DNA of 64,000 bases, from positions 131,502,001-131,566,000 of the forward strand of contig JBITNC010000001.1 in the NCBI GenBank assembly GCA_050084985.1, written 5' to 3'. A model generated the notes under the pieces. The model worked only from the letters and a program-made list of their open reading frames with translations. It was not told the DNA's origin and did no database searches. Each line of letters starts with the position of its first letter. Position 1 is the stretch's first letter. Source of the stretch: Nageia nagi. Taxonomy: Eukaryota; Plantae; Pinophyta. Both the position numbers and the translations under genes were made by a program. Below are positions 6,348 to 63,135 of the stretch, one piece after another.

Positions 6348-8421
6348 AAATGAACTTTTACTATTGATTAACCTAAGGTAATATAAATTATGCTCGTTTA
6401 ACTAAAGTAAATCCTAGATACAAGATACAAACTTATTGTAAATTGATCTTAGGTATGAATATCAGATAATTATCTATTGGGGTTTTGAGTTGAAGGGATA
6501 GTAAAGGTAAGAGTTAGAAATGTATAAGGCCAAATAAGGTGAACTACCACCAACACAAGCATCATAAATCTTTTGATCCTTGGGTATAAACAATGCTCAA
6601 ATTTCATAGCCACAGGTAGTCATAGTTGGATGCATTAGTAAAATGACTACAATACCTAATAGCCACAATTTGATCTATGCTTGAATTCCTTCCTAGGAGG
6701 CATGCAACTATTAACAACAATCCTAGAGTAACAAATATTTCAAACACAACCTAAGGGGGCAAATAGTGCAATCTCATCATCCCAAAATATACATAATAGT
6801 TTTCATAGGGTAATATTTAATAAGTATTTAACCTTTTATTTAGTAGAGGCCTCTAGTATTTATAGAAATTTACAAGAGTTGAGATTGCATCCCTACCTAC
6901 TAAACTATGAGTTGCAATTCTCATTGATTACAAAATAAGATCTTTTAAATCTTAGATAGGGATTTACATCATCTAGAATTAAATCTTAAAAAAATATGAT
7001 TGATTCAAGGTACAATATGTAAGAGTGCCATGATATTATTGATTCTAATGTAGAGGTCTCATCTGGAAGCTTTTAATTCTAATTTACTCTATCTTCAAGC
7101 TACAAGTTTATATTATATTAGATAAAGGTTTTCTTATGATCAAATAATGTATCTACAGTTGGAAGACTCATGGATGTGATTTCTCTTGTATTTATTGCAG
7201 TATGGTTTGAAGGTGTTTGACCCTTTTTCTCGATTATACTCTCCTCAAAAATGTAGTTACATAAGTTATTGCCTTAATCTTGATCTAGCAATCTAATTTT
7301 GCACATCAAGTCTCAATTAGTTGGTAATCAATAACCCTATCTTCTTGCATTTTAATTTAAATTGTACCAAATAAGGATGTTTCATGGTTATGGAACCTCT
7401 AAAAACTTGATCTTTCATTTTTAAATGAATATGCATTCTTCTTGATGGAATCTACATCGAATCTAAGCTGGAAAGGTGGTCATTTCATAGTGATTTTTGA
7501 TGAATTCACATTGCAGAGTGATAAGATGATGTAATCATCTTATGAAGTGTGGAGAGAGCATTTTGGGATACATGATAACCTTCTAAAGTTCTTTTTTATA
7601 GTGAATTTGAGCTAATCTAGGGTGCAAAGTCTTAGTTTGTTTAGTAGCAATTCTAGAGTATGGAGAGACACATGGCAAGATTGGAGAGGTGGTAGATGTT
7701 AACCTTTCAAAGAAGTTCATACTACAAAGTGTTCTCTTGGTTGAATTTGGAGTGCAGATCTGACAACCTGATGTAAGCCTTTTCTACAATATGGATTCCT
7801 TTGTATTATTTTTACTTCCATGATGCAAAGAAACATTATGATGTCAACCATATTTAGAGTATGAATTTCCTTTATTTGTATTATGTTTCTAGGGTGTGAA
7901 TGATCTTGTTGATGTAAGCGACCTTTGGGTTCAAGATTCACTCAATTTTGAGCGTAAAAGGGCATTTTGAACTATCTTTAGCAGTATGGAGGATGTTGAT
8001 ATCATCAAAACCATCTAAAATATGAATTTACTTTATATGCATGTAAACTTAGAGTATTTTCTTCTTTCCAGGGTTTAGAGAAGCATGGATGATATCATCC
8101 ATATTTGGGATGTAGATAAGCCTCAAAAGCCTACAAATAAATAAAAACTAAGGATCGTATAACAAATATATGTACTAATATAGAATATATGATGTCTATT
8201 AATTAAAATCTAAGCATACTTATACATTATGAGTTGACCATCAATTTGAATAAGATTTGATGCTTGAACAAGTAAATGTAAACAAAACACAATCATAGTA
8301 ATACACAAAATTTGAGCCTAATAAAAACATAGTCTTATCATTATATTTATAAGCACCATGTACAAAATTATATATATAGTTACAAATATTATCTCTACAT
8401 ATCTCTATTGTGAATCACTAG

Positions 8422-9068
8422 AATGATTTAATTATGGATCACAAAGTATTCGTTTGTGTAGTTGGGACTATAGCAAGATTGCATCCATGTAAGCTACAAA
8501 GGGATGTCTATAGAAAAGAGGATAGGTGGTTCCATGGGTCACTCACAAGCTATCACTAGATAAGCACTCACCTCACTCAATACCATAAGTAAAGGAGGAT
8601 TTGTCTCAACAATAATGATAATGCTACTAACAACAATAAAAACAACTATGGTTGAAGTAAATACAACCATTTATATAGTAGAAAACTCCATAAGATAAGG
8701 AGATACAAGAAGAATATGCTTCCATGGAGTTGTTGGTGGAGTAATGGTGAGGTAATAGAGTGTGTTGACTATAACTAATAAAGGAATGGATGGCCATGCC
8801 TATCCATATGAGGAATCCTGATCCAAATTTGATCATATCTCATGTCTATATACCTACAATGAATAAGTATCTTGAGACATAAATATCTTCATCGATACAT
8901 TATAATTTAAAATGAAATGATGTGTATATGGGAAAAAATTTAAAACCCATGCATTATTTAAATTTTTCCCTCATTTTTATAATAATTTAAAGGTGATTCT
9001 ATAATCTTGACTTCTTTGAAATTTATAAAATATTGTAACATCAATATCAATGAAATAAATTTTCTTCA
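8422..9068. repeat. Diverged direct repeat, copy 1 (copy 2 at 10199-10787)
   Basis: Shared collinear blocks: ttgcatccatg, taagcactcacctcactcaat, catgcctatcca, ccaaatttgatca, aaattaaaacccatg. Confidence 0.85.
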
Positions 9069-9120
9069 TTATCTCCCTTAATGTAAAATATTTTATACTC
9101 TATAAGAAATTGATGAAAAT

Positions 9121-9689
9121 TTGATTTGTTGATCTCATGTGGATGTCATCATGTCACTGATATAGGATCATTAAATCCATTTGGATTGAATTAGGTTTCA
9201 TAAAATATTGAAATTTTGAAATTGTCATGCTCTATGGATGGCAAATAATGGCACCAAGCTCTATAACCAATTGAAGAATTTTAAAGTTTCTAAGTTGTAA
9301 AGTTAACAAAATATAGGATCAAGGTTATGATACTAATTAAATATTTTGAAGCATATATACTAAAAGTTCTATTACCATGTTAGAATTTGTAGTTTTTCAA
9401 ACCTTCAACTATTGAAAAACCTACAAATTCTAACATGGTATCATATATTTGAGCCTATGGCCTTCAAAATCTTCAATTGGTATAAAGGCTTAAGCCTCTA
9501 GTTTGCTAACTTTAAGCTCAGAACTTTAAATTATTCAAATGATATCAAAACTTGATGTCATTTTTCACCATCCTTGGATCATGAAGACTTCAAAATTTTA
9601 TCATGGTATTGGAACCAATTCAATCCAAATGGATTCAATGATCTTGTATTGGCAACATGATGACATCTAGGGGGAGATCAATAGATCAA
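9121..9689. repeat. Long imperfect inverted repeat (arms ~280 bp, 11-nt loop) with arrayed PBS(Met)-like motifs; candidate small-RNA hairpin
   Basis: Core: taccatgttagaatttgtagtttttcaa-[accttcaacta]-ttgaaaaacctacaaattctaacatggta. Outer pairs: aatccatttggattgaatt/aattcaatccaaatggatt and gatgtcatcatgt/acatgatgacatc. Confidence 0.9.
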
Positions 9690-10198
9690 GTTGCTATGTT
9701 GTATATGGTTGGAAAGGTGAAAATAAGGGCTTTTCAAAGATTCAATTTCCATTAAAAAAAGAGGTATAAGGAGAAATAAATAGCCCCTAAAATCTTACTA
9801 ATTTTTCTATGAGAAAACATAATGAACATTTGTTTTAGAAAGGTAAACACATAATATGAATAGAAATGAAAATTTAGTCAATGAATGCCAAAGGAATGAA
9901 ATACAATGCTCTTATATTTTTCAAATAAAGTTGTAGCCTTACTCAATGATAAATATTACATGCTCTAGATCTTTACATAAAAAATACATTAGTTTAGTGT
10001 ATCTATGGAACCCAAAATCACCATGAACTATAATAATGTGTTATGGTATTCTCAATAGGCTCTAGGAGTAAATAAACCACTACAAATATAAGGTTTAGTT
10101 GATTAAAATAATGAATTTTCAATGAGAACCCATACAAATCCACTAAAAGGCTTGGAAAATTACAAAGACTATCTTTACATCTCTTTGTGGCAAATCAA

Positions 10199-10787
10199 AA
10201 TGATTCAACTATGAATCATAGAGTGTCCATTTGTGTAGTTAAGACTATGGTTATATTGCATCCATGCAAGATACAAAGGCTTATTTATAGAAAAGATGAT
10301 ATGTGGTACCATAGGGCACTCACAGGTTTCTATTGGGTAAGCACTCACCTCACTCAATGCCATAGGTAAAGGAGGCTCTAGCTCAATACTAATGATAATA
10401 CTATTGGTAAAACTAACAACAACTATGGTTAAAGCAAATAATACCATATATACACCAAAAAACTCCATGAGAAAAGAATATAGGTGAACAATATGCTTCC
10501 ATGTATTTGTTGGAGGACTAATGGTGAGGTGATGGAGTGTGTTGACTACAATGTGATAAAGGAATGGAGGATCATGCCTATCCACATGAGGAATCTTGAA
10601 CCAAATTTGATCAAATTTTATATCTATAAAACTATAGTGGAGGAGTACATGGATACATACATATCTTCATCAATACATTGCAATTTAAATTAGAGGGATG
10701 TGCATATGGAAAAAAAATTAAAACCCATGTAAATTCCAACTTAATAAATCATTGCAACACTAATATCAAGGAAATAAATTTCCTTCA
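10199..10787. repeat. Diverged direct repeat, copy 2, contiguous with the gypsy gag/pre-protease relic
   Basis: Collinear with 8422-9068 and directly follows ORF 10785-11063 on the minus strand. Confidence 0.85.
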
Positions 10788-21912: not shown

Positions 21913-22404
21913 GTTTATTCTCATGGTTGAATTTAGTGACCCAGCAGCATGTGATGGATTGCATAATGCTACATATATGGTACATGTTTTGTTTGTCCAA
22001 TAGAATGAATGGGAGTTACCTTCTTATAACAGAACTATAATTTTTTTCTTATAATTTAACATCATACTTTATAGAGTGTTCAACTTGCAATGACTACTTT
22101 ATTTCTTATTTTGTAAGTCAATAACTTCATATATGTATTAAAGATACCCTTATATAGATAATTATTTCACTGTAATTCTTACGCATCTGCTTTTAGCTCT
22201 CAGAAGGTGAGCTATCTTGTTTTAATCATGTGTTTTTATGAATGTAAGTTGGGGAGACAATATCTAATTATTGTATTTACATTAGATGATAGTTTCTAAA
22301 CTGATTGAAAGAGCTCTAATACAAGTTTTATAAAAAGGAATATGCTTTATGAGCAGGATGAATATTTTATTTTGTTTCTGTTTTTTTTTTTTTGCTTGTT
22401 ACAG

Positions 22405-22683
22405 AGAATTCCAAGAGAGTTTGTGGCACAATTGAAGGACAAACTTAGGGAAGACCTTATCTTGGAAGGTCCAAGTGGGCAGATTTGGATTGTAACCAGA
22501 GATTCAGAGATGAATTTGGTAAAGGGTTGGGACACATTTGTGTTTAATCACTCTGTTCAAAATGGCGAACTTCTGGTGTTTAACATGGTGCAACCCTCTT
22601 TTTTTAAAGTCCATATATATGGCAGAGAGGGGGGAGAACGACATGCACAGTTCAGGATTGATGTCAACCAAATGGACATCTAG
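22405..22683 (+). CDS. B3-domain (REM-family) transcription factor, exon 2
   Basis: Long poly-T tract and ACAG| acceptor, phase 0. RIPREFV...LILEGPSGQIWIV...KGWDTFVFNHSVQNGELLVF...FKVHIY is a typical REM B3 domain. TAG at 22681. Spliced product is 152 aa. Confidence 0.88.
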   Translation, partial: RIPREFVAQLKDKLREDLILEGPSGQIWIVTRDSEMNLVKGWDTFVFNHSVQNGELLVFNMVQPSFFKVHIYGREGGERHAQFRIDVNQMDI

Positions 22684-22874: not shown

Positions 22875-23630
22875 GGTGAATATCCATATATCTCATTTCA
22901 TGAAATTGAAATTTTGCAATATGATGTCTTCACATAGTTTTTTTTTATTGAAATTTTGCAATATGATGTCTTCATATTGCAATATGAGATTTTGCAATTT
23001 GACTTTAACATCCATGTGGACAGTCTTTCATAGACTTGAGTGCTATGTTTGACAGTTTTGATATTGCAATATGAGATTTTGCAATTTGACTTTAACATCC
23101 ATGTGGACAGTCTTTCATAGACTCGAGTGCTATGTTTGACAGTTTTGATTGCTACTTATTTATGTAAAAGCAGTGAGTAGGTTTTTTTATATAACTGAAC
23201 AAATACACAAGTTTTAAACGATGGGAACTTCATGTTGTGTGTGCATTAAACTGCTTTAAGGTCGAATTCAACTGCTTTAAGGTCGAATATCATTGCTATA
23301 TTTTTTGTGACTTTTTTATAGTGAATATCAATATTTTTCATCTATGAAATTGAAATTTTGCAATACGGTATCTTCACATTGCTCCTTTTTTAGTATATCA
23401 TTTGTGCAAGTATCATCTGAGTAAGCATCCGTATGGACGGTCTTTCATAGACTCACTCTTCTATTTGAGGGTTTTGATTGCTGCTTCTCTATGTTGCAAC
23501 TTATTTTTTTTATATAACTGATAATATTCGTAAGTTTTAACCATGTAAATTTCATGTAATGTCCCCTCTCCATGCTATTTAAGGTGCATTAAACTGGTCT
23601 AGGTGTATTAAACTGCTTTAAGGTCGAATT
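22875..23630. repeat. Nested tandem duplications just 3' of the B3 stop
   Basis: An 87-bp unit at 22974 and 23061 (1 mismatch seen) lies inside an older duplication, ~22875-23290 vs ~23320-23630. Confidence 0.85.
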
Positions 23631-24696: not shown

Positions 24697-24769
24697 CGAC
24701 TCCGCTAGGGGTTTAACACAGAACCTCCGGTACCATAGACCGGCGCCTTATCCATTGGGCCACGGAGTC
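24697..24769 (-). pseudogene. tRNA-Arg(ACG)-derived gene with anticodon ATG; probable tRNA pseudogene
   Basis: 73 nt: GACTCCGTGGCCCAATGGATAAGGCGCCGGTCTATGGTACCGGAGGTTCTGTGTTAAACCCCTAGCGGAGTCG. Perfect 7-bp acceptor and 5-bp anticodon stems and an intact A-box. The T-loop reads TTAAACC instead of TTCGATC and the T-stem has a mismatch. Confidence 0.85.
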
Positions 24770-24904: not shown

Positions 24905-25105
24905 TTATTTATTTATTTTTGAAGAAAAAAGGTTATTTAATTAAGTAAAAGTTTTTACAATAAAAAGTGGTTGGTGGACAAAATGACACCCCTAGAAATT
25001 ATGAGATATATTATTTATTTTTTGATAAAAAAGGTTATTTAATTAATTAAAAGCTTTACAATCAAAAAGTGGTTGGTGGATAAAATGACATCCTTCGAAA
25101 TTACA
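24905..25105. repeat. ~100-bp tandem duplication at the LINE 3' end
   Basis: aaaaaaggttatttaattaa...aaaaagtggttggtgga.aaaatgaca...gaaatta occurs twice. Confidence 0.8.
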
Positions 25106-27608: not shown

Positions 27609-27960
27609 CAAAATAGAGCATGCACATATGAATTCCTCATATATGGATAACTGAATAGTGCCAAAAGACACATAAGACTTCCTCACACATGGATAAATGA
27701 ATAGTGCTAGATTGACCAAAATAGAGTATGCACATACGAGTTCCTCACATATGGATAACTGAATAATGCTAAAATACACAAGAGTTCCTCACACATGGAT
27801 AACTGAACAATGCTAGATTGACCAAAATAGAGTATGCATAGACGAGTTCCTCACATATGGATAACTGAATAGTGCCAAAAGACACATAAGAGTTCCTCAC
27901 ATATAGATAACTGAACAGTGCTAGATTGGTCAATTTGTACAACAAGTTCTTCACATAGAG
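27609..27960. repeat. Higher-order tandem array (three ~107-bp dimeric units) in the copia 3' UTR
   Basis: Core gagttcctcacatatggataactgaatagtgc occurs six times with two alternating linkers. Units start at 27609, 27717 and 27823. Confidence 0.9.
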
Positions 27961-29864
27961 CAAACTTACCATGAAAGTGTATAATAAAATCAACACTATA
28001 CAACACAAAATCCTCTTAGGGTTGAAGTTATCATCACAAACATGAATTCAACATAAGAATTCAAATTTCAATCCCACTTGAGGGTAACTTCACCAACCCA
28101 ATAACATCTCTAAGCTTACAGAAGTGAGCTTCCATGAGGGGCTTGGTGAACAAATTAGAGGAGTTCAAGGTGGATGGATAATACTCTAAGTGTATGATGC
28201 CATCAAGAACCTTTTCCTTGATAAAATGGGCATGGATTTTTTTATATTTTATTTTCTGATGGAACATAGGATTCTTAGCCAAAGAAATAGCCAACTGATT
28301 ATTTAAAGAGATCAAAGATGAGCCACCTTGCTCGTACCTAATTTTTTTCAAAAGATACCTTAGCTAAATGGCTTCCTGGGCTACAATAGACATGACATGA
28401 TATTCAACTTCTATGGTGGAAAGAAAAATAGTAGGCTACTTCTTGGAGGCCCAAGAGATAGCACTTGAACCAATGCTAAACACATATGCAAAGGTTGACT
28501 TCCTATCATCTCTATCTCTCCCATAGTCAGAATCTGAGTATCCAGAGAGAACAAATGAGGGCAACTTGGAATACTTGAGAGCAAGATCCTTAATCCCTGT
28601 AACATACCTCAAAATTTGCTTAATAGCATTAAGATGTTCAACATAAGGTTTCTGTATGAATCGTTTCATCAGATTCATTACGAAGGTAATATCCATTCTA
28701 GATATAGTTAAATACAAAAGACTACTAATTAATTACTTATAAGTTGTAGCATCAACTAACTAAGAGTTGGAGCTTAGAGAAATAGTGATTCTAGGAGAGA
28801 CTGGGATTGCAGCACATCTACACTCCTCTATTCCAAACTTCTACAGGATATTTGATATATACTTAGATTGATTGAGGTAAGTACAATTCTTGTATTGATA
28901 CACTTGCATTCTAAGATAATAATGCAAAAGATCAAGATCAATCATTTCAAATGTTGCTTTAAGTTTGGATATGCACTCTTGAATGATTTTATCATTATTC
29001 TCAGTAATCAAAAGATCATCCACATAAAGGAGAATCAAGATCCTACCTTTTCCTTGATTGAGCACATAAAGATCGAAGTTAAAAAAATATTTAGAGAATC
29101 TAATATCTGTAAAGTACCTTAAAATCTTTCTATACTAGGCTCTAGGTGCTTTTTTAAGTCCATATAATGACTTCTTTAGCTTACACACAAAAGACTCTTT
29201 ACCTTCCATAATAAACCCTTTTGGTTGATTCATGAAGATTTTCACATCTAAGTCACCATTGACAAATGCACTCTTAACGTCAAGTTGAAAAACATTCCAT
29301 CTTTGAGCTGCAAAAAGAGCAAGGATAACTCTCATAGTAGGCATCTTTGCCATGAAAGCAAAGGTTTTCTTATAATCTACATTGTATTTTTGAGCAAAAC
29401 TTCTAGCCACTAACCTTGCCTTGTATTTATCAATATCTTTGATTAAATTAAATTTGACCTTGTAGATCCACTTATTGCCAATCACATTCTTCTCATTGAG
29501 GTAAGGAACCAAGTCTTAAATTTTATTTTTCATAAGCACTCATACTCCACTTTCATGGCTTCCATCCAGCACTCATGCTTAAAAGCTTCTTTGAAGGTTG
29601 AGGACTCATGCTTATTATCAATCTTAGTAATTAATGATTTGTTCAAGCTTATACTCCTTGTTACCCTTTATGTTGGAGAATTTTATTCCTGAGATGACTT
29701 ATCTACATCAATATCCAACCATCTAGAAGCAACTGAAGAGTCCTTTAGATCATTAACATCCTCATTAGAAGAAAATTCTTTAGAAAGTTCATTGAATTTT
29801 ACATCCCTTGAAATGAACACTACTTTATAGGTTAAAGAGTAGAGTTTGTATCCTCTATATTGAA

Positions 29865-31638: not shown

Positions 31639-32136
31639 TGTTAGAATTTGTAATGAAATATTGTGAATATCTAAACTCCTTGTAAATTCAATTAATCACT
31701 TAAGGGTATGTAGATACCTTAAGAGATTAATTAAATTCTTTAATATGTATACTTTGACTTTACCAAAGTGGTTAGTTGGTAGGTTGAAGTTTGGTGATAC
31801 ATTTAATGTAACCCTAACCTTACCCTTGGGTTAAAGGAAGGTTAGGGAGGTGCTCTCAAGCTATAAATAGAGGGCCTCTCCTCTTGTAAACATATCTAAG
31901 TTTTGGAGAAAGTTTACTCTACTTGGTTGTGTAGGAGAGAGCAAGAGAATAGTTGTAAGAGAGACATGTATTGAGAATAGAGAACTAGTTGTGGATGTAC
32001 TCCCAAGGAGGGAGGAACCACATTATATTGGTGTCATAATGTGTGAATGATGTTCTTAGAATTATAGATGATGAATGATTTAGCTTCCTAGTCTAAGGTC
32101 CTAGAGGATTTGTTTAGATCTAGTTCAAATCCTTCA
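31639..32136 (+). mobile_element. Solo LTR (498 bp), same family as 62137-62615
   Basis: TG...CA, perfect TSD CCTTT, internal ctataaata. Removing it restores the copia gag frame SSSSKR|FEKKG. Confidence 0.92.
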
Positions 32137-50970: not shown

Positions 50971-51692
50971 TGATCCATAATCATCGGATGCTTATAACAT
51001 ACTTAGATCCTCACTTAGAGATTCAAATGAGAATAGTTAACCATTATGAGATCATACAAATTGCATATAAATTTGAAAATTGCATAATGTAAATCACAAA
51101 CTAGCAATCTCAAACACACAACAAGATCAAAATAATGATTTACCCTGATCCACCCAATGTGGGCTAATCTAGGATGGAATTGGTCTCATCTCATTATCTA
51201 TGGACATCATAATAGTACATGTATAGAGAAATACCATCAACATAATGGCAATACAATCTTCTACAATTACTATAATCTCCTACAGCAAGAAGAAAATATA
51301 ATCTCAAAACTACAATAATTTTGGAATGACTCTTGGTCTTCCTTCAAACTATTACAATTCTAAAATCCCAAAATTCTACAATCCTCTCTTATTGAGAATC
51401 ATGAATGAGATATGCCATTAAATAAGCCTCTAGAACAATCTAAAATGTTGGCCAATAAACCTAAATTGCTCAATCTTCTAAAATGCTAATGTCTCTTCAA
51501 ATACCCTTACTGACTCATCAAGGTGTATGCCATTCACAACCTAAAAACAATATTTAGTATGCCTCTAGTAGCCTAAAATTGAATACCAAAATACTCCAAA
51601 TTTTGATCTTTAGTCTATCTCCAAGCACATATATCTTTGGATTGAGTATTTCTCCTAAAAATAAAACTTGACACATGATCCAATTCAGATCA
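50971..51692 (-). repeat. 3' LTR (722 bp); PPT tggggaggtg (minus strand) adjacent at 51693-51702
   Basis: Collinear with 55980-56725; preceded by TSD AAGGT. Confidence 0.93.
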
Positions 51693-54600
51693 CACCTCCC
51701 CAATGGAGAAACTTATGGTCAAGTTTATATTTTTCATGTCTCATCTTATACTTGGATTTGCTTGTTTCAAGTTTCTCTTGGACTTTCAAATTAATTTGAC
51801 TAATTCTTTCAACAAATTTTTTAGTTTGCTTTTCCTCTTTCTTAAATGAATCTTCTTTATCCCTTTGCTGCCCAAACACACAATTAAAAGGTGAAGATGA
51901 TAAATAACCAAAATAAGTCTCAAAAGGACTCTTATTAATGGAAGGATGAATTGCCCTATTGTATGCATGTTGGATATATTCAAGATGTTCATCCCAAGAC
52001 TTAGGATGTTTTCCATAATAACCCCTCAAGAGTTGAATTACCATCCTATTCATCACCTCGATTTGTTTATCTATTTAAGGATGAAAGGTAGTACTTATCT
52101 TCAACCTTGTGTCCATATTTTCCCACAAATATGTCCAAAACTTGCCTAAAAATCTACTATCTCTATCTGAAACAATAGAATTAGGTAATCCAAAATGAAC
52201 ACAAACATGTGAAAAGAATAAATTTGTAGTATCTTATCCTATTATAGTATTTTTACATGGAATCAAAACACACATCTTGGTAAATCTATCCATAACAACA
52301 AATAAATAGTCATTACCTTTCTTAGTCATAGACAATCCTCCCACAAAATCCATTGAGATATATTTCCTTGGATATGAAGGTACTTTAAGTGGTTAACACA
52401 AACCTAATTTATTGTTACTTGTCTTGCTAGTGCAATACAAAGAACACCCCCTTATGTACTTGGCAACTTGATCTTGCATCTTTGGCTAATATACATATCT
52501 TTGCAAATTGTATAATGTCTTTCCAATCCCAAAATATCCTGCAATCTTTGATGCATATGCTTCTATAATTAGACCAATCCTTTCACCTACAGGGACACAT
52601 AATGCATTAAAATAATAAAGAAGTCTATTTTACAAATGAAATTCATCCAAACCCTCTTACTTAGACCTAGATGAAGAAAACTACTCATACATTTCTTTGA
52701 AGTTTGGATCCTACACATATGCCTCTAAAAATGACTCAGATAGAAAAGGAAGAAATTTTAGCATTAAGAGGAAACTCATTGGACCTTATTTGCATGTCAC
52801 TAATGGTCCAAAATTAGTACTACATGCCATTGATGGCATGTAATCTATAGTTATAGGTGGCCTAAAAAGCATGTTAATAACTTTATTTCGTGTTCCTTTC
52901 TCATACTTGATTACTATATGAAATTGTTGTAAAAAACTCATCCATATATAGTGTTTAGTTTGTTTTAATTTTGATTGAGTTTGTAAAACATTTAATGGTT
53001 GATGATCAGTATGAATGATTATTTCTTTACCCATTAAGTAATGTTTTCACTTTTTAACAACTTAAACCAATGCATACATTTTCTTATCATAAGTAGGATA
53101 ATTCAAAATAGCCCCACTAAACTTTTTAAAATGATAGCAAATTGGTTTATCTTCTTGTAACAAAATGATTCCCATAGCATAGTCACTTGCATTAGTCTCT
53201 TCTTCAAATGGATTCTATAAATTAGGAAGTGCTAGCATAGGTGCATTAATAATCTTTTGCTTCAAAGTATCAAAAAATGTTCTTTGTTGTTTGCCCCATT
53301 GGATAACTTACCTCTTGTTGGTTACATCATGTAAAAGTGAAGTAATATGAGAAAAATTAATAATAAACTTTCTCAAATATTGGACAACACGTAAGAAACT
53401 CCTCACTTCAGTTACATTAGATAGCCTTGGCCAATATACTATAGCACTTATTTTAGTAGGATCTATCTAAAGTTATCCATGACTAATAACATGGCCTAAA
53501 TACACCAAAGACTCTATGCTAAACTCACATTTTGAATGTTTCAACAGCAACTTCTCCCTATGAAAAGTTTGAAACACTTGTCTAAGATGTACAACATGTT
53601 CTTTCCAAGTAGAACTATAAACAAGAATATCATCCAAGTATACAACAATAAACGAATCAATAAATGGATGAAGTACATCATTCATTACCCTCATGAAAGT
53701 AGCTAGTGCATTATACAAACCAAATGAAAAAACAAGCCACTCAAATAAGCCTTGTCTTATCTTGAAGGTAGTATTCCATATTTTCTCATCCTTGATTCTA
53801 ACTTGGTGATATCCACTTCTCAAGTCCAATTTTGTGAAAAATCTTTCTCCTTACAATTGATCCAAAAGATCATCTATCTGAGGTAAAGGATAGCAATTTT
53901 TGATGATGATTTTATTTAATGCTCTATAGTCAATGCATATTCTCCAAGTTTGATCCTTCTTGAAAACCAAAATAATAGGTGATACACATTTATATGTACT
54001 TGCTCTGATCACTTCTTGATCAACCAACTCCTAAATTTGCCTCTTTATCTCCCCTTAATCCAAAACTAATTACCGATACAAAGCTATGTTGGGAAATGAA
54101 GCATTAGTTAACAACTCAATATCATGTTGTATATTCCTCATAGGAGGTAATCCCTTTGGCTCTACAAATAAGTTGGTGAACTCTTAAACCAAATCTTGCA
54201 TCTGTTCCTCTCTTTTGCACACTACTGGTGACCTGAAATTAGTATTCATGCTGCTAATAGCATGAGATTCACCTCACTCAAGGCTCCTATTTTCACCATG
54301 ATTAGAACAAAATTTTTAGAAGCATTTACAAGATGTTTTACCTAATTGGTAGTGACCAAAGGTAGCTTTTTCCTGCTTTTATGTGCACTAGCTAGAAACA
54401 TCTTTCCATCTTTCACCAATCATAATTTATTCAATCTTTTGTAATAAATGCCATCTCTATCTCACATGTAAGGGTTACCAAGAATAAAACCATAAATATC
54501 TAAAGGAACAACATCAACCACAACTTCCTCAATGTACTTTACATAATTAGCAAATTTCAACTTACATTGCTTAGTGACTTGTAAACTAGCATTATGATGC

Positions 54601-55965
54601 AACCAACCCAAAGGATATGGATTTGGATGGTTGAAAGTTTCTAATCCCAAATTACTTACCATAGTCTCTAAAATCAAATTTTCTTGAGAACTCGAATCAA
54701 TAATGCAATCTACTTTGGTTTTCTTAATTTAGATTTTGAGGTGGAATAATTGAATCCTTTATTCTTCAATGTTTTGAGGTTCTTCAACCTTTTGAATGGC
54801 TGAAAAATTTATTTCTCATCAACTTTTAAATTACCCTTGATATCATCAAATTTAAGAACCATAGAATTAGTTTTCTCCTTATTCTTAAGCTTATATGGAT
54901 GTAATTTTGGATGTAATTTCCAACATTTATCATCAACATGACCATCTTTATCATAATGATACAATGTCTACCATCACCTTCTTTCTTAGAAATATTAGTG
55001 GTCTTAGTTTCTTGGTTACCTTTGCCTTTATCTTGAGATTTAGCTTTCTCTTGTCCTCCACTTGAATTCGAATCCTTCTTGGATTCATCATATTGTCTCC
55101 TTGGTTTACCATCCTCCTTTAAGTATTGTGCTTGCACACACACTTGATCAAGATTAGTAGGATTAAACAACATGATAGTATTTTGCAAATGACTATGTAA
55201 ACCTCCAATGTACCTCATTAAAGTTTGAGGATTTTTTAGTGAAACCCCAAGCAAAGTAGCTTATTTACTATATTTTGTAGTGTATTCTTAAACATTTTTC
55301 CCTCTTTGTTGTCTAAAGAATTACCATTTCATCAATTGTTTATTATGATATCATAATGGATACAATTGATCTCTTAAAAACTCTTAAATTAATTCCAAGA
55401 AGATATTTTAGATAAGTGTTCATGATTAAGAGTTTCTACATAGCTTTCCCACTAAATTAAAGCATGTCCACTCATCTTTAATCTAGCAAAATAGATTTTA
55501 TAAACATCATTTATAACACCATGAATTTGGAAATAAACCTCGAATTATGTCAACCAATTGTTCACCTTTTCCACATCAACCTCTCCTCCAAAAGTAGGAA
55601 TGTCCACTTTGGCCTCCACCTAGAATGGAACTCTATTTGATGAAGATGATGAATCAGGTTTATCAACTACATCATGATATCTCTAATTGATATTTGCATT
55701 TGCTCTAGCATCCAACAACTTAGCTAATCAAGCCAAATGATTCTCCATTGTCAAAAACCTTATTTCAAAATTGACATCTGTTATGGTATGTACAGGTGAC
55801 TGTTGCTCCTCTGCATTATCCATTATAGTTGCTCTACTCTTTTGAACAATCTCAAGATCCTATGGAATTAATTATGGTCTTTGAGATCTCCTCCCAAACA
55901 TCAAATTTCACATCGCTAGCTATGTGGAATTCTTAAAATTGCAACCCTAAATTTTTACAGCACAA

Positions 55966-55977
55966 GCTCTGATACCA
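55966..55977 (-). other. tRNA-iMet primer-binding site
   Basis: gctctgatacca is TGGTATCAGAGC on the - strand, 2 nt from the LTR end. Confidence 0.95.
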
Positions 55978-55979
55978 TA

Positions 55980-56725
55980 TGATTTGTAATCACTGAATGC
56001 TTATCGCATACTCGGATCCTCATTTAGAGATTCAAATAAAAATAGTTATCCATTATGAGATCATACAAATTGCATATAAATTTACAAATTGCATATAAAT
56101 TTAAAAATTACATAATGTAAATCAATAACTAGAAATCTCAAACACACAACAAGATCAACATAATGATTTACCTTGGTTCACCCAATGTTGGCTAATCCAG
56201 CATGGAATTAGATCCTTCTCTTCTAATTGTCTATGGACATCATAATACTACATGTATAGAGAAATACCATCAACATAATGGCAATACAATCTTCTATCAT
56301 TAATGTAATCTCTTATAGTAAGAAAGAAATATAATCTCAAAACTACAACAATTCTAGAATGACTCTTGGTCTTCCTTCAAACTATTACAATTATAAAATC
56401 CCAAAACTCTATAATCCTCTCTCATTAAGAATTAAGAATGAGATACACCATTCAATAAGCTTTCAAAACACTTTGAAACATTGAACAAGGAACTTGAACC
56501 ACTCAGTCTCCTAAAATGCCAATGTCTCTTCAAATTCCCCTACTAACTCATCAAGGTACACATTGTTAGCAGCCTAAAAATAGTATTTTTTATGCCATTG
56601 GTGGCCTAAAATTGAATGATAAAACACTCCAAATTTTGGTGTTTGGTCTATCTCCAAACACATATACCTCTAGATTAAGTATTTCTCTTAAAAAGATAAA
56701 TTGACACATGATCTAATTCAGATCA
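55980..56725 (-). repeat. 5' LTR (746 bp)
   Basis: Collinear with 50971-51692, with an extra 19-bp tandem copy acaaattgcatataaattt. Followed by TSD AAGGT. Confidence 0.93.
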
Positions 56726-57907: not shown

Positions 57908-60900
57908 AAAGGCCCCCATTCTGCAAGTATAATGAAATGAAACTATTTAAAATGAAATTATGCTTGAAAAGTAAGTAAATGGTAAATAGAAGAAAAATTT
58001 GATACTTCCATAGTTTAGCTATAAAATCATTCAATCATCAAGGATTGATGATGTATATTTCCCCCTATTTGCCTTGGTTGTGAGATGGAATGACAATCCA
58101 TGGAATAGGAACAACCAAGAACAAATAAAAACCTATAAAATGAGAGATAAAAAATAGGAACTTCCAAACATATGTATGATGATAAACTCATAAAAGATGT
58201 AATGATGATAGTGAGAGAAAATCATGTTAAGTGCATGTTATCTTAATGACAATACTTAATTCCCTATTCATAGATAAAAATCATTATAGCATAACCAAGC
58301 ATCCCATTCATGGACTCATTCATAATATTTTATCAAAAATAATATATAAATAAAGAGAAAGGATGAAATTAATATAATATGCACACATCATCATAAAAAT
58401 ACTAAATATCCTATTCATAGATTCAAATCATCACAAAAATACCCAATGTTTCATTTATATATGCATACATATGATCATATAGAAGTACCATGATAATGTT
58501 TAGTTTGGTACCAACCAATAGAGTGATCATAATGAAGGTTAGTTTTGTCCCAACCAACAAAGTAATAATAGTGATGGTTAGTTTAGTCTCAACTAAAAAT
58601 ATGGTTATAGCAATAGTTATTTTAGTCCCAAATAATAAAGTGATCGTATAAATGGTTAGTTTAGTCCCAACCAACAAAGTGATGAAGCTCAAATGAGGGT
58701 CACATTATCATGGCATCAAAAAAGTACTCTAATCATGGATGCACATCATCATGGAAGTAATGATGCCCTATTCGTGGATGTATCAAATGAATATAACCAA
58801 AAATATGGATTTTATCATGTCTTCCTAGTAAATATGAATAGTAAAAACAATGATGGTTATTTAACATCCATCCAATAAGGACATTATCATAAAGAAATGA
58901 TGGTTATTTATGTTCATCCAACAAGTATATGATCATAAATTAGCCATGCAAAGGAATATCATACTAAAGCATTGTAACAATGAATAGTATGCATTTATTA
59001 GTTATGCATTTAAAGATAAGAAATGGTTCATAAAATAATACCTAAAATTACCATTGAGTACCAATTTATATGTAGAAAGGCTAACATGGATGCTAATGGG
59101 GGTGTGACTGCTGATGTCAACACAAAGTTGATCTTATTGATAGAAATGACCTTGGCATTTATATGAGATTGAGAAGACCTGACTATCAACCTGATAAAAT
59201 GCAATTTATTTCTAAAAAAGGATACCTTTTCTCCTAAGGTATTAAGTGTATGATTGATAAATCTCAAATTGTTGAACTAAATTACACAACTACTTATATA
59301 TAATTTCATTGTAAGAAATGAACTAAAGGACCTATCCAATACCCCTATGATGATTGAGTTTTGTTGGATATTAAAATATTCTAAGAAGACCAGCATGGGT
59401 ATTGGGTTACATGTAGATTTTTGCATCAAAAGCTAACATTGGTACTAGTACAACATAACATAAATAGAGCTAGGTGACTCATACTATGCATCTACATAAA
59501 TGCTTGATTGGCAAATACCATCTAAAATACAAGTGACATGCTTCTCTTATGCATAAAAGGATTTTAGATGCTTGGCATTGATTGAAAATTTATCTACATT
59601 TCATTTAACTGTTACTAATCTATATGCTCTATTTGAATATTTTGTTTTGATGATGTATGGACCCATGTATTTCTTTTTGACTTGTGATTTGTGATGATTT
59701 TATTTAAGTACTAAGTCTCCAACTTGGAATTCTCTTGGTATAATTTTCTTTCCATATGCTTTGTTTATTCTTCTCTAATAAGCTCTAAGGTATTCTAAAG
59801 CATGGATCCTTTTCTCATCCAATCCTTTTAACTGTCTTATTCTTGATTTTCTTTATTCTTCATAATCAATGATTCCCTTCAAAGATACCCTTAGTGATGG
59901 TATTTCCAATTCTAGCGGAAGTACTACCTCATATCCATAGACTACTAAAATGGTGTATACCATATTATTGATATGATGCTAGTACTATATGCCCATAGTA
60001 CATATATAAGTTGATGTAAGATTTTATTTTATGTTTATAATATGTTTCCTTGTGGATAATATGTTGATGAAAACTTTTATTTTATCTTGAATATCTTACA
60101 AAAATTTCTAACTTGTTTACTTATAAAGTTATTTCCATTATCTATGATTATGTGATATAGAACACCAAATCTTTCAATAATATTCTCAGTCAAGAATTTT
60201 ACAATTTGAGTACCCTTATATGATCTCAAAGGTATTGCTTCTTCCATTTAGTGAAATATTTAATATCAATTAGTATAAACTTATATCCTTCACTAGATTT
60301 AGGATTGATAATCCCAACCAAATCCAAAGCCCAAATATAAAAAGGTCAAGGAGAAACCATTATAGCTAATTCACTTGAAGGATAAAGTCTTAAGTTAGTA
60401 TGCTTTTAACATTTTTCACATCTCTTAACATGAAGTATGAAATATTTTTCCATAGATGGCCAATAGTAACCTAGTCTTAAAAGCTTATGAAATATAGATT
60501 TGCCATTAAAATGTACCCCAATTATATTTTCATGCACTTGTTCTTTAGCCTTGCTAGTTTCATTATCATTCAAATATCTATGCAATGTGCCATCAAAATA
60601 TCTTTTGTAAAGAACATCACCAATAATGACATAACTAATTTCCATATGCTTGAGTCTTAATTTGAGAAACATTATTTGATATGAATATGGGATTTTTTCA
60701 TCTTTTAAGTAGTTGTAAATATCAACATACCATTCATGCAATGGTAAGATAACACTTACAAATGGTTATTTCTCAAAGAATGTGTTGAAGTTAGTTTCAT
60801 CTACAAAAGATATATTCCTTAGATTATTGATTTTGATAATAGTTTCTTCATATTCAATTGATATAGGTATCAAAGAAGTGGCATTTTCCATTGAATCAAT

Positions 60901-62136: not shown

Positions 62137-62629
62137 TGTTAGAATTTGTAATGAAATATTTTGAATATCTAAACTCCTTGTAAATTCAATTAATCACTTA
62201 AAGGATATGTAGATACCTTAAGGGATTAATTGAATTCTTTATTATGTGTGGACTTTGACCTTACCATGGGGTTAGTTGGTAGGTTAAAGTTAGGTCATAC
62301 ATTTATTGTAACCCTAACCTTACCCTTGGGTTAAAGGGAGATTAGGGAGGTGCTCTCAAGCTATAAATAGAGGGCCTCTCCTCTTGTAACATAACTAAGT
62401 TTTTGGAGTAAGATTACTCTACTAGTTTGTGTAAGAGAGAAAGAGAATTGTAGTAAGAGGTGCATAGATTGAGAATTGAGAACTAATTGTGGATGTACTC
62501 CCAAGGAGGGAGGAACCACATTATATTTGTGTTATATTGTGTGAATGGTGTTATGTTGAATGATTGAGTTTTCTAGTCTTGGACCTTGAGAATTAGAGTA
62601 GGTCTAATTCCTTCAATTGGTATCAGAGC
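62137..62629 (+). mobile_element. 5' LTR (62137-62615) plus tRNA-iMet PBS (62618-62629) of a truncated element
   Basis: Collinear with solo LTR 31639-32136. Junction reads ...ccttCA-at-TGGTATCAGAGC. No gag seen downstream. Confidence 0.9.
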
Positions 62630-63135
62630 TTGGTGTGGAAGCTCTTCTTTTACATCTTGGAGGTTCTTCATCCTTCTTCATTCCTCATCTTACACCCCAT
62701 TGGTGAGGTAAAAATAAGAGAAGGTATAAATTTTCTCCTCCTTTGGTTATCTTATGGATTATTGCATTAGATACTAACATATTTTGTGAGATATTGGAGC
62801 TTATTTTTTTGCAAAATATGATCAAAATGGCAATGCAAGCATTTTTTATACTAACCTCTTATGTTAGTAGCATGTTTTTTACAAAATGCTTAATACATGA
62901 TATACCTTTTAAGAGGATACTATGTAATGCAAATTTTTTTTTACTAACATTTTGTTTGTTAGTAACATTGATTAATCACTAATCCCATTAAAAAAAAGGG
63001 GTTTATGAGGGTTCTGTTTGTCATAAAATTTATGATTTTTGCATATATATATATATATATATAGTTATCAGCATTTTTATATATATAAAAAAATTATATA
63101 TAAAAATTTGGGGGGGATCAAGTAACAAAATGGTC

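Follow-up and report, generated by a model that had tools for sequence, protein, structure and literature searches.

A 575-nt hairpin with repeated LTR-end/PBS-like units in Nageia nagi, probably a decaying inverted duplication derived from an LTR retrotransposon lineage

Introduction

Mu killer of maize is a natural inverted duplication of the terminal or 5′ region of a transposon. Its hairpin transcript is diced and the resulting siRNAs silence the parent family. Mu killer was derived from the DNA transposon MuDR, its arms are near-identical and its activity has been demonstrated. Plant miRNAs are known that act on LTR retrotransposons. miR845 targets the tRNA-iMet PBS (Borges et al., bioRxiv 10.1101/203612), and it has been proposed that MIR845 originated when a 5′ LTR and the PBS were truncated and inverted (bioRxiv 10.1101/203612). 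A MIR845 locus is reported to give one mature miRNA, to contain an intact complement of the PBS and to be expressed in pollen (10.1101/203612; the miR845a/b sequences are from Fahlgren et al. 2007, PMC1790633). For MIR845 orthologues, for example that of strawberry, an origin from tRNA-iMet by inversion has been suggested (cited in 10.1101/203612). In strawberry, fve-miR1511, which comes from a single locus, recognises the iMet PBS of LTR transcripts (Surbanovski et al. 2016, as summarised in PMC9780303 and cited in 10.1101/203612). The PBS of LTR elements is also the target of 3′-CCA tRNA fragments, which originate by cleavage of mature tRNA (Schorn et al. 2017, cited in 10.1101/203612; PMC7472051). 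Both MIR845 and miR1511 act at the iMet PBS to silence LTR retrotransposons, and the only basis on which the inversion of LTR and PBS has been proposed is the short mature miRNA.

Here, we describe a 575-nt hairpin in a 64,000-nt stretch of Nageia nagi DNA, the whole of which was analysed and is referred to as the window. Like Mu killer, the locus appears to be an inverted duplication of a TE segment, which can be folded into long dsRNA. Unlike Mu killer, it seems to be built from repeats of an LTR/PBS junction, its arms are about 25% diverged and it is known from its sequence alone. As in MIR845, the putative small-RNA arm is antisense to the iMet PBS and extends into the LTR end (junction type ...TCA-AT-TGGTATCAGAGC). 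The hairpin also resembles the origin model of MIR845 at the DNA level, in that it would be an inverted LTR-end/PBS segment. In contrast to MIR845, the hairpin is 575 nt long, possesses four degenerate units per arm, each of which differs from the PBS at 3/12 or more positions, has no Rfam match and has come to light only as genomic DNA. It differs from the fve-miR1511 group, for which an origin by inversion of tRNA-iMet has been suggested (10.1101/203612), because its units hold LTR-terminal sequence and a spacer. With the 3′-CCA tRNA fragments, it shares the vulnerable target, the PBS; however, its antisense strands are genome-encoded in a putatively TE-derived hairpin and include non-tRNA (LTR) bases. 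Because of the multi-unit arms and the length, we consider the locus to be nearer to Mu killer and similar long inverted-repeat siRNA loci. In the cited literature on MIR845, miR1511 and PBS-targeting tRNA fragments, we found no description of several junction units per arm.

Structure of the hairpin

The imperfect inverted repeat is located at positions 9118–9692 (+ strand), and RNAs of both strands are predicted to fold. The hairpin has ends at 9118/9121 and 9689/9692, and its arms of about 285 nt are 74–77% identical. A repeat search aligned 9142–9284 with 9525–9667 (74% complementary) and 9330–9397 with 9416–9483 (78% complementary). When the hairpin was compared with the window by BLAST, its own reverse complement was returned over 9118–9692 (74.4%). 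The minimum free energy of the + strand RNA was −235.4 kcal/mol, as compared with −120 ± 5 kcal/mol for dinucleotide shuffles (z = −23.6), and the predicted structure was one long hairpin. For the − strand RNA, the minimum free energy was −221.4 kcal/mol (z = −18.4). The original prediction had placed a long hairpin at this locus, and the inverted repeat and the RNA fold bear this out.

The centre of the hairpin is a near-perfect stem-loop at 9373–9440 (+), which consists of a stem (9373–9400/9412–9440) and an 11-nt loop (9401–9411). This 28-bp stem has one bulge and is otherwise perfect, including all G/C columns; the remaining parts of the arms are about 75% identical. The near-perfect stem could reflect local constraint, gene conversion from arm to arm near the loop, or a younger core. 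We considered whether selection can be read from this stem. However, by a rough estimate, given the AT-richness and the many possible blocks, such a stem is not clearly above chance, and this reading was rejected.

The PBS-like units

The motif that we scored is the 12-mer of the tRNA-iMet PBS, TGGTATCAGAGC. In the 3′ arm, four units match it at 9/12 positions on the + strand: unit a (9436–9447, TGGTATCATATA), unit b (9478–9489, TGGTATAAAGGC), which is immediately preceded by CTTCAAT, unit c (9540–9551, TGATATCAAAAC), in which all three differences are G to A, and unit d (9604–9615, TGGTATTGGAAC). In the 5′ arm, antisense units are found on the − strand at 9366–9377 (unit a, GTTCTATTACCA on the + strand, 9/12), at 9324–9335 (unit b, 9/12) and at 9252–9280 (unit c with its flanks, of which the PBS core, 9258–9269, matches at 9/12). 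Seven matches of this quality had been predicted, and all of them are at the predicted positions (9436, 9478, 9540 and 9604 on the + strand; 9366, 9324 and 9258 on the − strand). A fourth copy in the 5′ arm had been predicted near 9195. A weak antisense copy is present at 9195–9206 (−), but it matches only at about 6/12 positions and contains a gap.

In agreement with the prediction, each motif in the 3′ arm is preceded by CA and 0–2 nt, and the units represent several junction variants: CA is joined directly to TGG in units a and d, and CA-AT or CA-AA precedes TGG in units b and c. The spacings of the motifs are also as predicted, namely 42, 62 and 64 nt in the 3′ arm and 42, 66 and 63 nt in the 5′ arm. 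The further claim that these spacings are near multiples of 21 is arithmetically true. However, this regularity is post hoc and is a consequence of the unit period of about 63 nt; therefore, we place little weight on the 21-nt register and rejected it as evidence of phasing. The registers of the motifs modulo 21 are 7, 7, 6 and 7 in the 3′ arm and 0, 0, 18 and 18 in the 5′ arm.

In the whole 64-kb window, the motif is not enriched (35 matches, as compared with 38.8 expected). When the arms were shuffled with conservation of dinucleotides, the mean numbers of matches were 0.08 and 0.06, and none of 20,000 shuffles reached three or more. Shuffled AT-rich hairpins, which the original prediction had named as a possible source of similar counts, do not yield them. 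We also enumerated all 4^12 12-mers on the real 3′ arm, a comparison that allows for both the composition and the internal repetitiveness of the arm. Only 0.025% of the 12-mers give at least four matches, and the iMet PBS is among them. The cluster of PBS-like motifs is far above chance and the array is real. It should be mentioned that the seven matches correspond to fewer than seven independent events, because each arm mirrors the other and there are similarities among the units: units b and c are alike (z of about 8), and so are units a and d (z of about 5).

Comparison with true LTR/PBS junctions

A true LTR followed by AT and an exact iMet PBS is present outside the hairpin at 62137–62629 (+), and we used it as a reference. 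The LTR (62137–62615, TGTTAG...CCTTCA) starts with TGTTAGAATTTGTA and ends with CCTTCA, and a 2-nt AT spacer separates it from the PBS (62618–62629). A second LTR copy (31639–32126) is 86% identical to this LTR and fixes both LTR boundaries. Exact iMet PBS sites occur at two positions in the window, 62618 (+) and 55966 (−). The comparisons with the junction, and those between the arms that are given below, were made position by position between natural sequences.

The best non-self BLAST match of the hairpin within the window is exactly the 62618 junction, one of the two exact PBS sites. The reverse complement of 9252–9280 is AATTCTTCAATTGGTTATAGAGCTTGGTG, and the true junction at 62606–62635 is AATTCCTTCAATTGGTATCAGAGCTTGGTG. 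When 5′-arm unit c was aligned with this junction, the LTR end, the AT spacer, the PBS and six leader bases (TTGGTG) were all aligned (score 41; z = 11.3 as compared with shuffles). Units b and c of the 3′ arm gave z values of 7.3 and 6.3 against the same junction. In the 3′ arm, unit c is followed by TTGATGT, where the true element has TTGGTGT. Furthermore, the exact 12-mer TTCAATTGGTAT is found within the window only in 3′-arm unit b (9472–9483) and at the true junction (62612).

The exact 14-nt 5′ terminus of the 62137/31639 LTR family, TGTTAGAATTTGTA, is present at 9378–9391 (+), where it directly adjoins the anti-PBS at 9366–9377. Its reverse complement (TACAAATTCTAACA on the + strand) is present at 9422–9435 (−); there, it resembles an LTR 3′ end (...CA) and directly adjoins unit a. 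The window contains this 14-mer at no other positions than the starts of the two LTRs and the hairpin arms; in each arm, it adjoins the innermost PBS copy. The innermost unit reads TACAAATTCTAACA directly followed by TGGTA. The two ends of the LTR family form an imperfect inverted repeat (TGTTAGAATTTG and the reverse complement of CTAATTCCTTCA are identical at 8/12 positions). Therefore, unit a can be read as the 3′ end of an LTR of the same lineage, which is joined directly to the PBS.

We compared the 40 nt upstream of the units with five LTR or direct-repeat ends in the window and found no significant similarity. Thus, the LTR-derived part would be only the terminal 7–14 nt. An origin of the units from tRNA-iMet was also considered. 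We rejected this origin on account of the LTR-terminal bases and the AT spacer: the units are not copies of tRNA because a tRNA would supply neither of them.

The original prediction regarded the units as copies of LTR-end/PBS junctions, placed in sense and antisense orientation in the two arms of one hairpin. The match to the true junction and the shared 12-mer and 14-mer uphold this claim. Derivation of the hairpin units from LTR/PBS junctions is well supported by these alignments, and we consider it very probable.

Direct repeats flanking the hairpin

The hairpin sits between two direct repeats, DR1 (8380–9068, +) and DR2 (10160–10787, +), and starts 50 nt after DR1. The core of the repeats (8380–8951 and 10160–10729) is 78.7% identical over 573 nt, and a further homologous block (9019–9071/10738–10790) follows after a 59-nt indel. 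DR1 ends with ...TTTTCTTCA and DR2 ends with ...TTCCTTCA; both ends read ...CTTCA. The last 10-mer of DR2 has the same sequence as the end of the LTR at 62615, and the AT that follows DR2 matches the spacer of that LTR. A purine-rich tract, AAAAGGCTTGGAAAA, lies just upstream of DR2. In the opposite orientation, AAGGGAGATAA precedes a TG start.

A small, old element that contained the hairpin may have had DR1 as its 5′ LTR, and DR1, the hairpin and DR2 may together form an old 2.4-kb non-autonomous LTR-type element. The case for this element is incomplete. Neither repeat possesses a TG start (both begin with TTACAAA), no target-site duplication was found around DR1–DR2 (the flanks, TATAG and ATAAA, differ) and no PBS was found directly after DR1 (9068, TTATCTCCC...). 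The reading of DR1 and DR2 as LTRs, which have a CA end and a purine-rich tract without these other features, is weak.

Sequences of the locus were also found in run X1 (organism A), which is a set of DNA contigs (word share 0.06). One 228-nt contig covers 9537–9764 at 97% identity; the other pieces are scattered and are less than 90% identical. The locus and its right flank exist in another DNA sample, and the contig shows only that. Up to seven contigs of run X1, with less than 90% identity, are stacked on 9025–9104 (80 nt; the end of DR1 and 34 nt), and the body of DR1 is almost without contig cover. The segment 9025–9104 looks like a short, high-copy, AT-rich repeat. Two pattern scans of metagenomes returned nothing apart from one chance bacterial match, L001.

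Divergence of the arms

In a column comparison, the hairpin arms are 76.7% identical, DR1 and DR2 are 79.3% identical, and the LTR pair of a Gypsy-type element in the window is 84.8% identical. In the hairpin arms, 51% of the G/C columns and 6% of the A/T-only columns are mismatched. The corresponding values are 44% and 4% for DR1/DR2, and 38% and 2% for the Gypsy LTR pair. The bias of mismatches to G/C columns would fit methylated repeats, which lose cytosines by deamination. The hairpin arms and DR1/DR2 appear to be similar in age, and this fits a single event that made both, in which case the hairpin would have been near perfect at that time.

The PBS cores are identical between the arms at 29 of 48 positions. 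The 16 nt upstream of each PBS core are identical at 55 of 64 positions, and all columns outside the PBS cores at 188 of 244. Thus, the PBS cores are less conserved between the arms than the remainder (29/48 versus 188/244; Fisher p = 0.019). Selection for PBS complementarity would be expected to have the opposite effect. Within the hairpin, no intact complement of the iMet PBS (GCUCUGAUACCA) was found: seven copies differ from it at 3/12 positions and the eighth is weaker. The original prediction remarked that this copy looks eroded and may be dead. Our results agree with this remark, in that every PBS copy is at least 3/12 off and the arms have diverged like the neighbouring neutral repeats. 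Taken together, the divergence pattern argues against a present function of the hairpin.

Proposed origin

We propose that the hairpin is probably a decaying, TE-derived inverted duplication, that is, a fossil of the Mu killer or proto-MIR845 type. A short segment would have existed as about four direct copies, and each copy would have contained the last 12 nt or so of the LTR, a spacer of 0–2 nt, the tRNA-iMet PBS and a few bases from the start of the leader. Units would have been about 63 nt long, except for the innermost one, which would have been shorter. The array would then have been duplicated in inverted orientation around 9401–9411. The outcome would be a hairpin of about 285 bp with a 5′ arm that runs antisense to LTR-end/PBS junctions. 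It would derive from the LTR lineage that is still present in the window (LTR 62137–62615, PBS 62618), and template switching or snap-back in reverse transcription is a possible route. The hairpin event may be of about the same age as the duplication that produced DR1 and DR2; for this reason, the hairpin probably arose in, or moved with, a small non-autonomous LTR-type element. A transcript of either strand would fold into long dsRNA, and Dicer-like enzymes might cut this dsRNA into small RNAs that are antisense to the LTR-end/PBS junction. Such a route has been demonstrated for Mu killer and has been put forward to explain how MIR845 arose. At present, the locus would be in neutral decay as methylated repeat DNA. 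It would be at best a weak and heterogeneous source of siRNAs and not a maintained multi-miRNA gene.

Alternative explanations

Alternatively, the host may maintain, or may recently have maintained, the hairpin as a multi-duplex precursor, which DCL enzymes would dice into miR845-like RNAs for each junction variant. The locus would then be a multiplexed anti-retrotransposon cassette. The capacity of the hairpin to pair with true junctions bears on this idea. An Allen-type penalty was used to score the pairing of hairpin 21-mers with each of the two true junctions, and 189 random 575-nt windows served as the null. The best 21-mers of the hairpin scored 4.0–4.5; among the best scores of the 189 random windows, the lowest was 5.0 and the median was 7.5. 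Well-scoring 21-mers are, for example, the reverse complement of 9535–9555 and the + strand of 9251–9271. In an antisense RNA, several of the G to A changes of the 3′ arm give G:U wobbles, and this accounts for the good scores. Because some 21-mers score 4.0–4.5 and beat all 189 controls, residual pairing with the true junction is possible, but these scores are at the permissive limit of the target rules for plants. Moreover, 9256–9276 (AAGCUCUAUAACCAAUUGAAG) is identical to ath-miR845a (CGGCUCUGAUACCAAUUGAUG; sequence from PMC1790633) at 15 of 21 positions. Complementarity from the PBS into the LTR end is also present: 5′-arm unit c spans the LTR end, the spacer, the PBS and the leader.

These pairing results are on the side of the cassette, together with the number of junction units (four in each arm, representing at least two junction types), the position of the 3′-arm motifs in one 21-nt register (±1 nt), the near-perfect central stem and the presence of the locus at 97% identity in run X1. 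However, the 5′ arm is 3 nt out of register, every PBS copy is mismatched at 3/12 or more positions, and conservation between the arms is lowest in the PBS cores. The divergence of the arms and its G/C bias equal those of the neighbouring neutral repeats, and the direct repeats that enclose the locus are LTR-like and may be LTRs of a TE rather than host sequence. Furthermore, Rfam gave no match to a miRNA family: no family reached the gathering score in the entire window, and a permissive search (E up to 10) of 8600–10200 returned only generic hairpin matches of 17–30 bits, without a MIR845 or MIR1511 family. Given this evidence, we regard the host-maintained cassette as unlikely. The strict version, in which the locus serves or until recently served as a polycistronic PBS-targeting hairpin and one transcript is diced in register into several miR845-like RNAs, each for one junction variant, seems distinctly unlikely.

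It may also be considered that the beneficiary was the element and not the host. In this case, DR1 and DR2 would bound a non-autonomous LTR retrotransposon, and the hairpin would be a structured internal domain that acted in cis. Its sense PBS copies would once have primed and its antisense copies would have sequestered them, or the hairpin would have acted in packaging or dimerisation. The location of the hairpin, 50 nt past DR1 and between direct repeats of about 79% identity, is consistent with such a domain, as are the ...CTTCA ends that DR1 and DR2 share with the LTR at 62615, the purine-rich tract before DR2 and the similar age of the arms and the direct repeats. In contrast, the PBS is not directly after DR1, the TG start and the target-site duplication are both absent, one PBS suffices for LTR elements, and no further copy of such an element was recovered. 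We judge the cis-acting domain to be improbable.

A MITE or foldback DNA transposon unrelated to retrotransposons, in which the PBS-like words arose by chance and which gives only generic heterochromatic siRNA, would share with the hairpin the long AT-rich inverted repeat, the short loop and the sharp ends, and contigs of run X1 that overlap the inner hairpin with different neighbours (loose ends at 9368 and 9466) hint at other copies, but this explanation is very improbable in view of the missing target-site duplication at 9118/9692 (the flanks are ...TTGATGA on the left and GCTATGTT on the right), the lack of a second hairpin copy in the 64-kb window and the exact matches to true LTR termini and the junction, whose specificity is unexpected for a DNA transposon.

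If the hairpin is a decaying inverted duplication, as we propose, the locus would show the inversion of LTR and PBS at the stage of a long hairpin, with an LTR terminus, a spacer, a PBS and a leader that can be traced to a family 53 kb away. Should younger copies be present in related genomes or among paralogues, they would provide a direct series from a retrotransposon junction to a hairpin siRNA locus and then to a miRNA. Such copies could also show whether PBS-centred rearrangements in reverse transcription supply the raw material. If the polycistronic reading were true, the locus would be a MIR845-type gene caught at the long-hairpin stage of its birth, and plants would be able to multiplex their defence against the site that all iMet-primed LTR elements must keep. 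As a single eroded copy, the locus is useful as a lead rather than as an established defence system.

Other elements in the window

Matches to Pfam in the window comprise a B3 domain and fragments of RVT_1, RVT_2 and integrase. A degraded Gypsy-type LTR retrotransposon is located at 50971–56725 (−). Its LTRs are about 740 nt long and are 82% identical by BLAST, its exact iMet PBS (55966–55977) follows ...ATCA and TA, and an RVT_1 fragment is present at 53476–53829. In the LTR family that starts with TGTTAGAATTTGTA and ends with CCTTCA, the 62137 copy possesses the exact iMet PBS and its element continues beyond the end of the window (64000). The copy at 31639–32126 is a solo LTR or a 3′ LTR because no PBS follows it; an RVT_2 fragment (29138–29512) lies near it on the opposite strand. 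An ORF fragment at 22342–22683 (+) encodes a plant B3 DNA-binding domain (Pfam, E = 7e-9), and tandem repeats are found near it at 22968–23141 (87 nt, two copies), 24909–25103 (about 102 nt, two copies) and 27609–27933 (about 108 nt, three copies). ARAGORN called a tRNA-His with the unusual anticodon atg at 24697–24769 (−). Since Rfam has no tRNA there at the gathering score, the call is probably false or concerns a pseudo-tRNA. Finally, at 60853–60876 (+), TTCAATTGATAT is followed by AGGTATCAAAGA, which may be another degenerate LTR-end/PBS-like junction; it adjoins a fragment of an integrase zinc-binding domain (Integrase_H2C2) at 60409–60741 (−).
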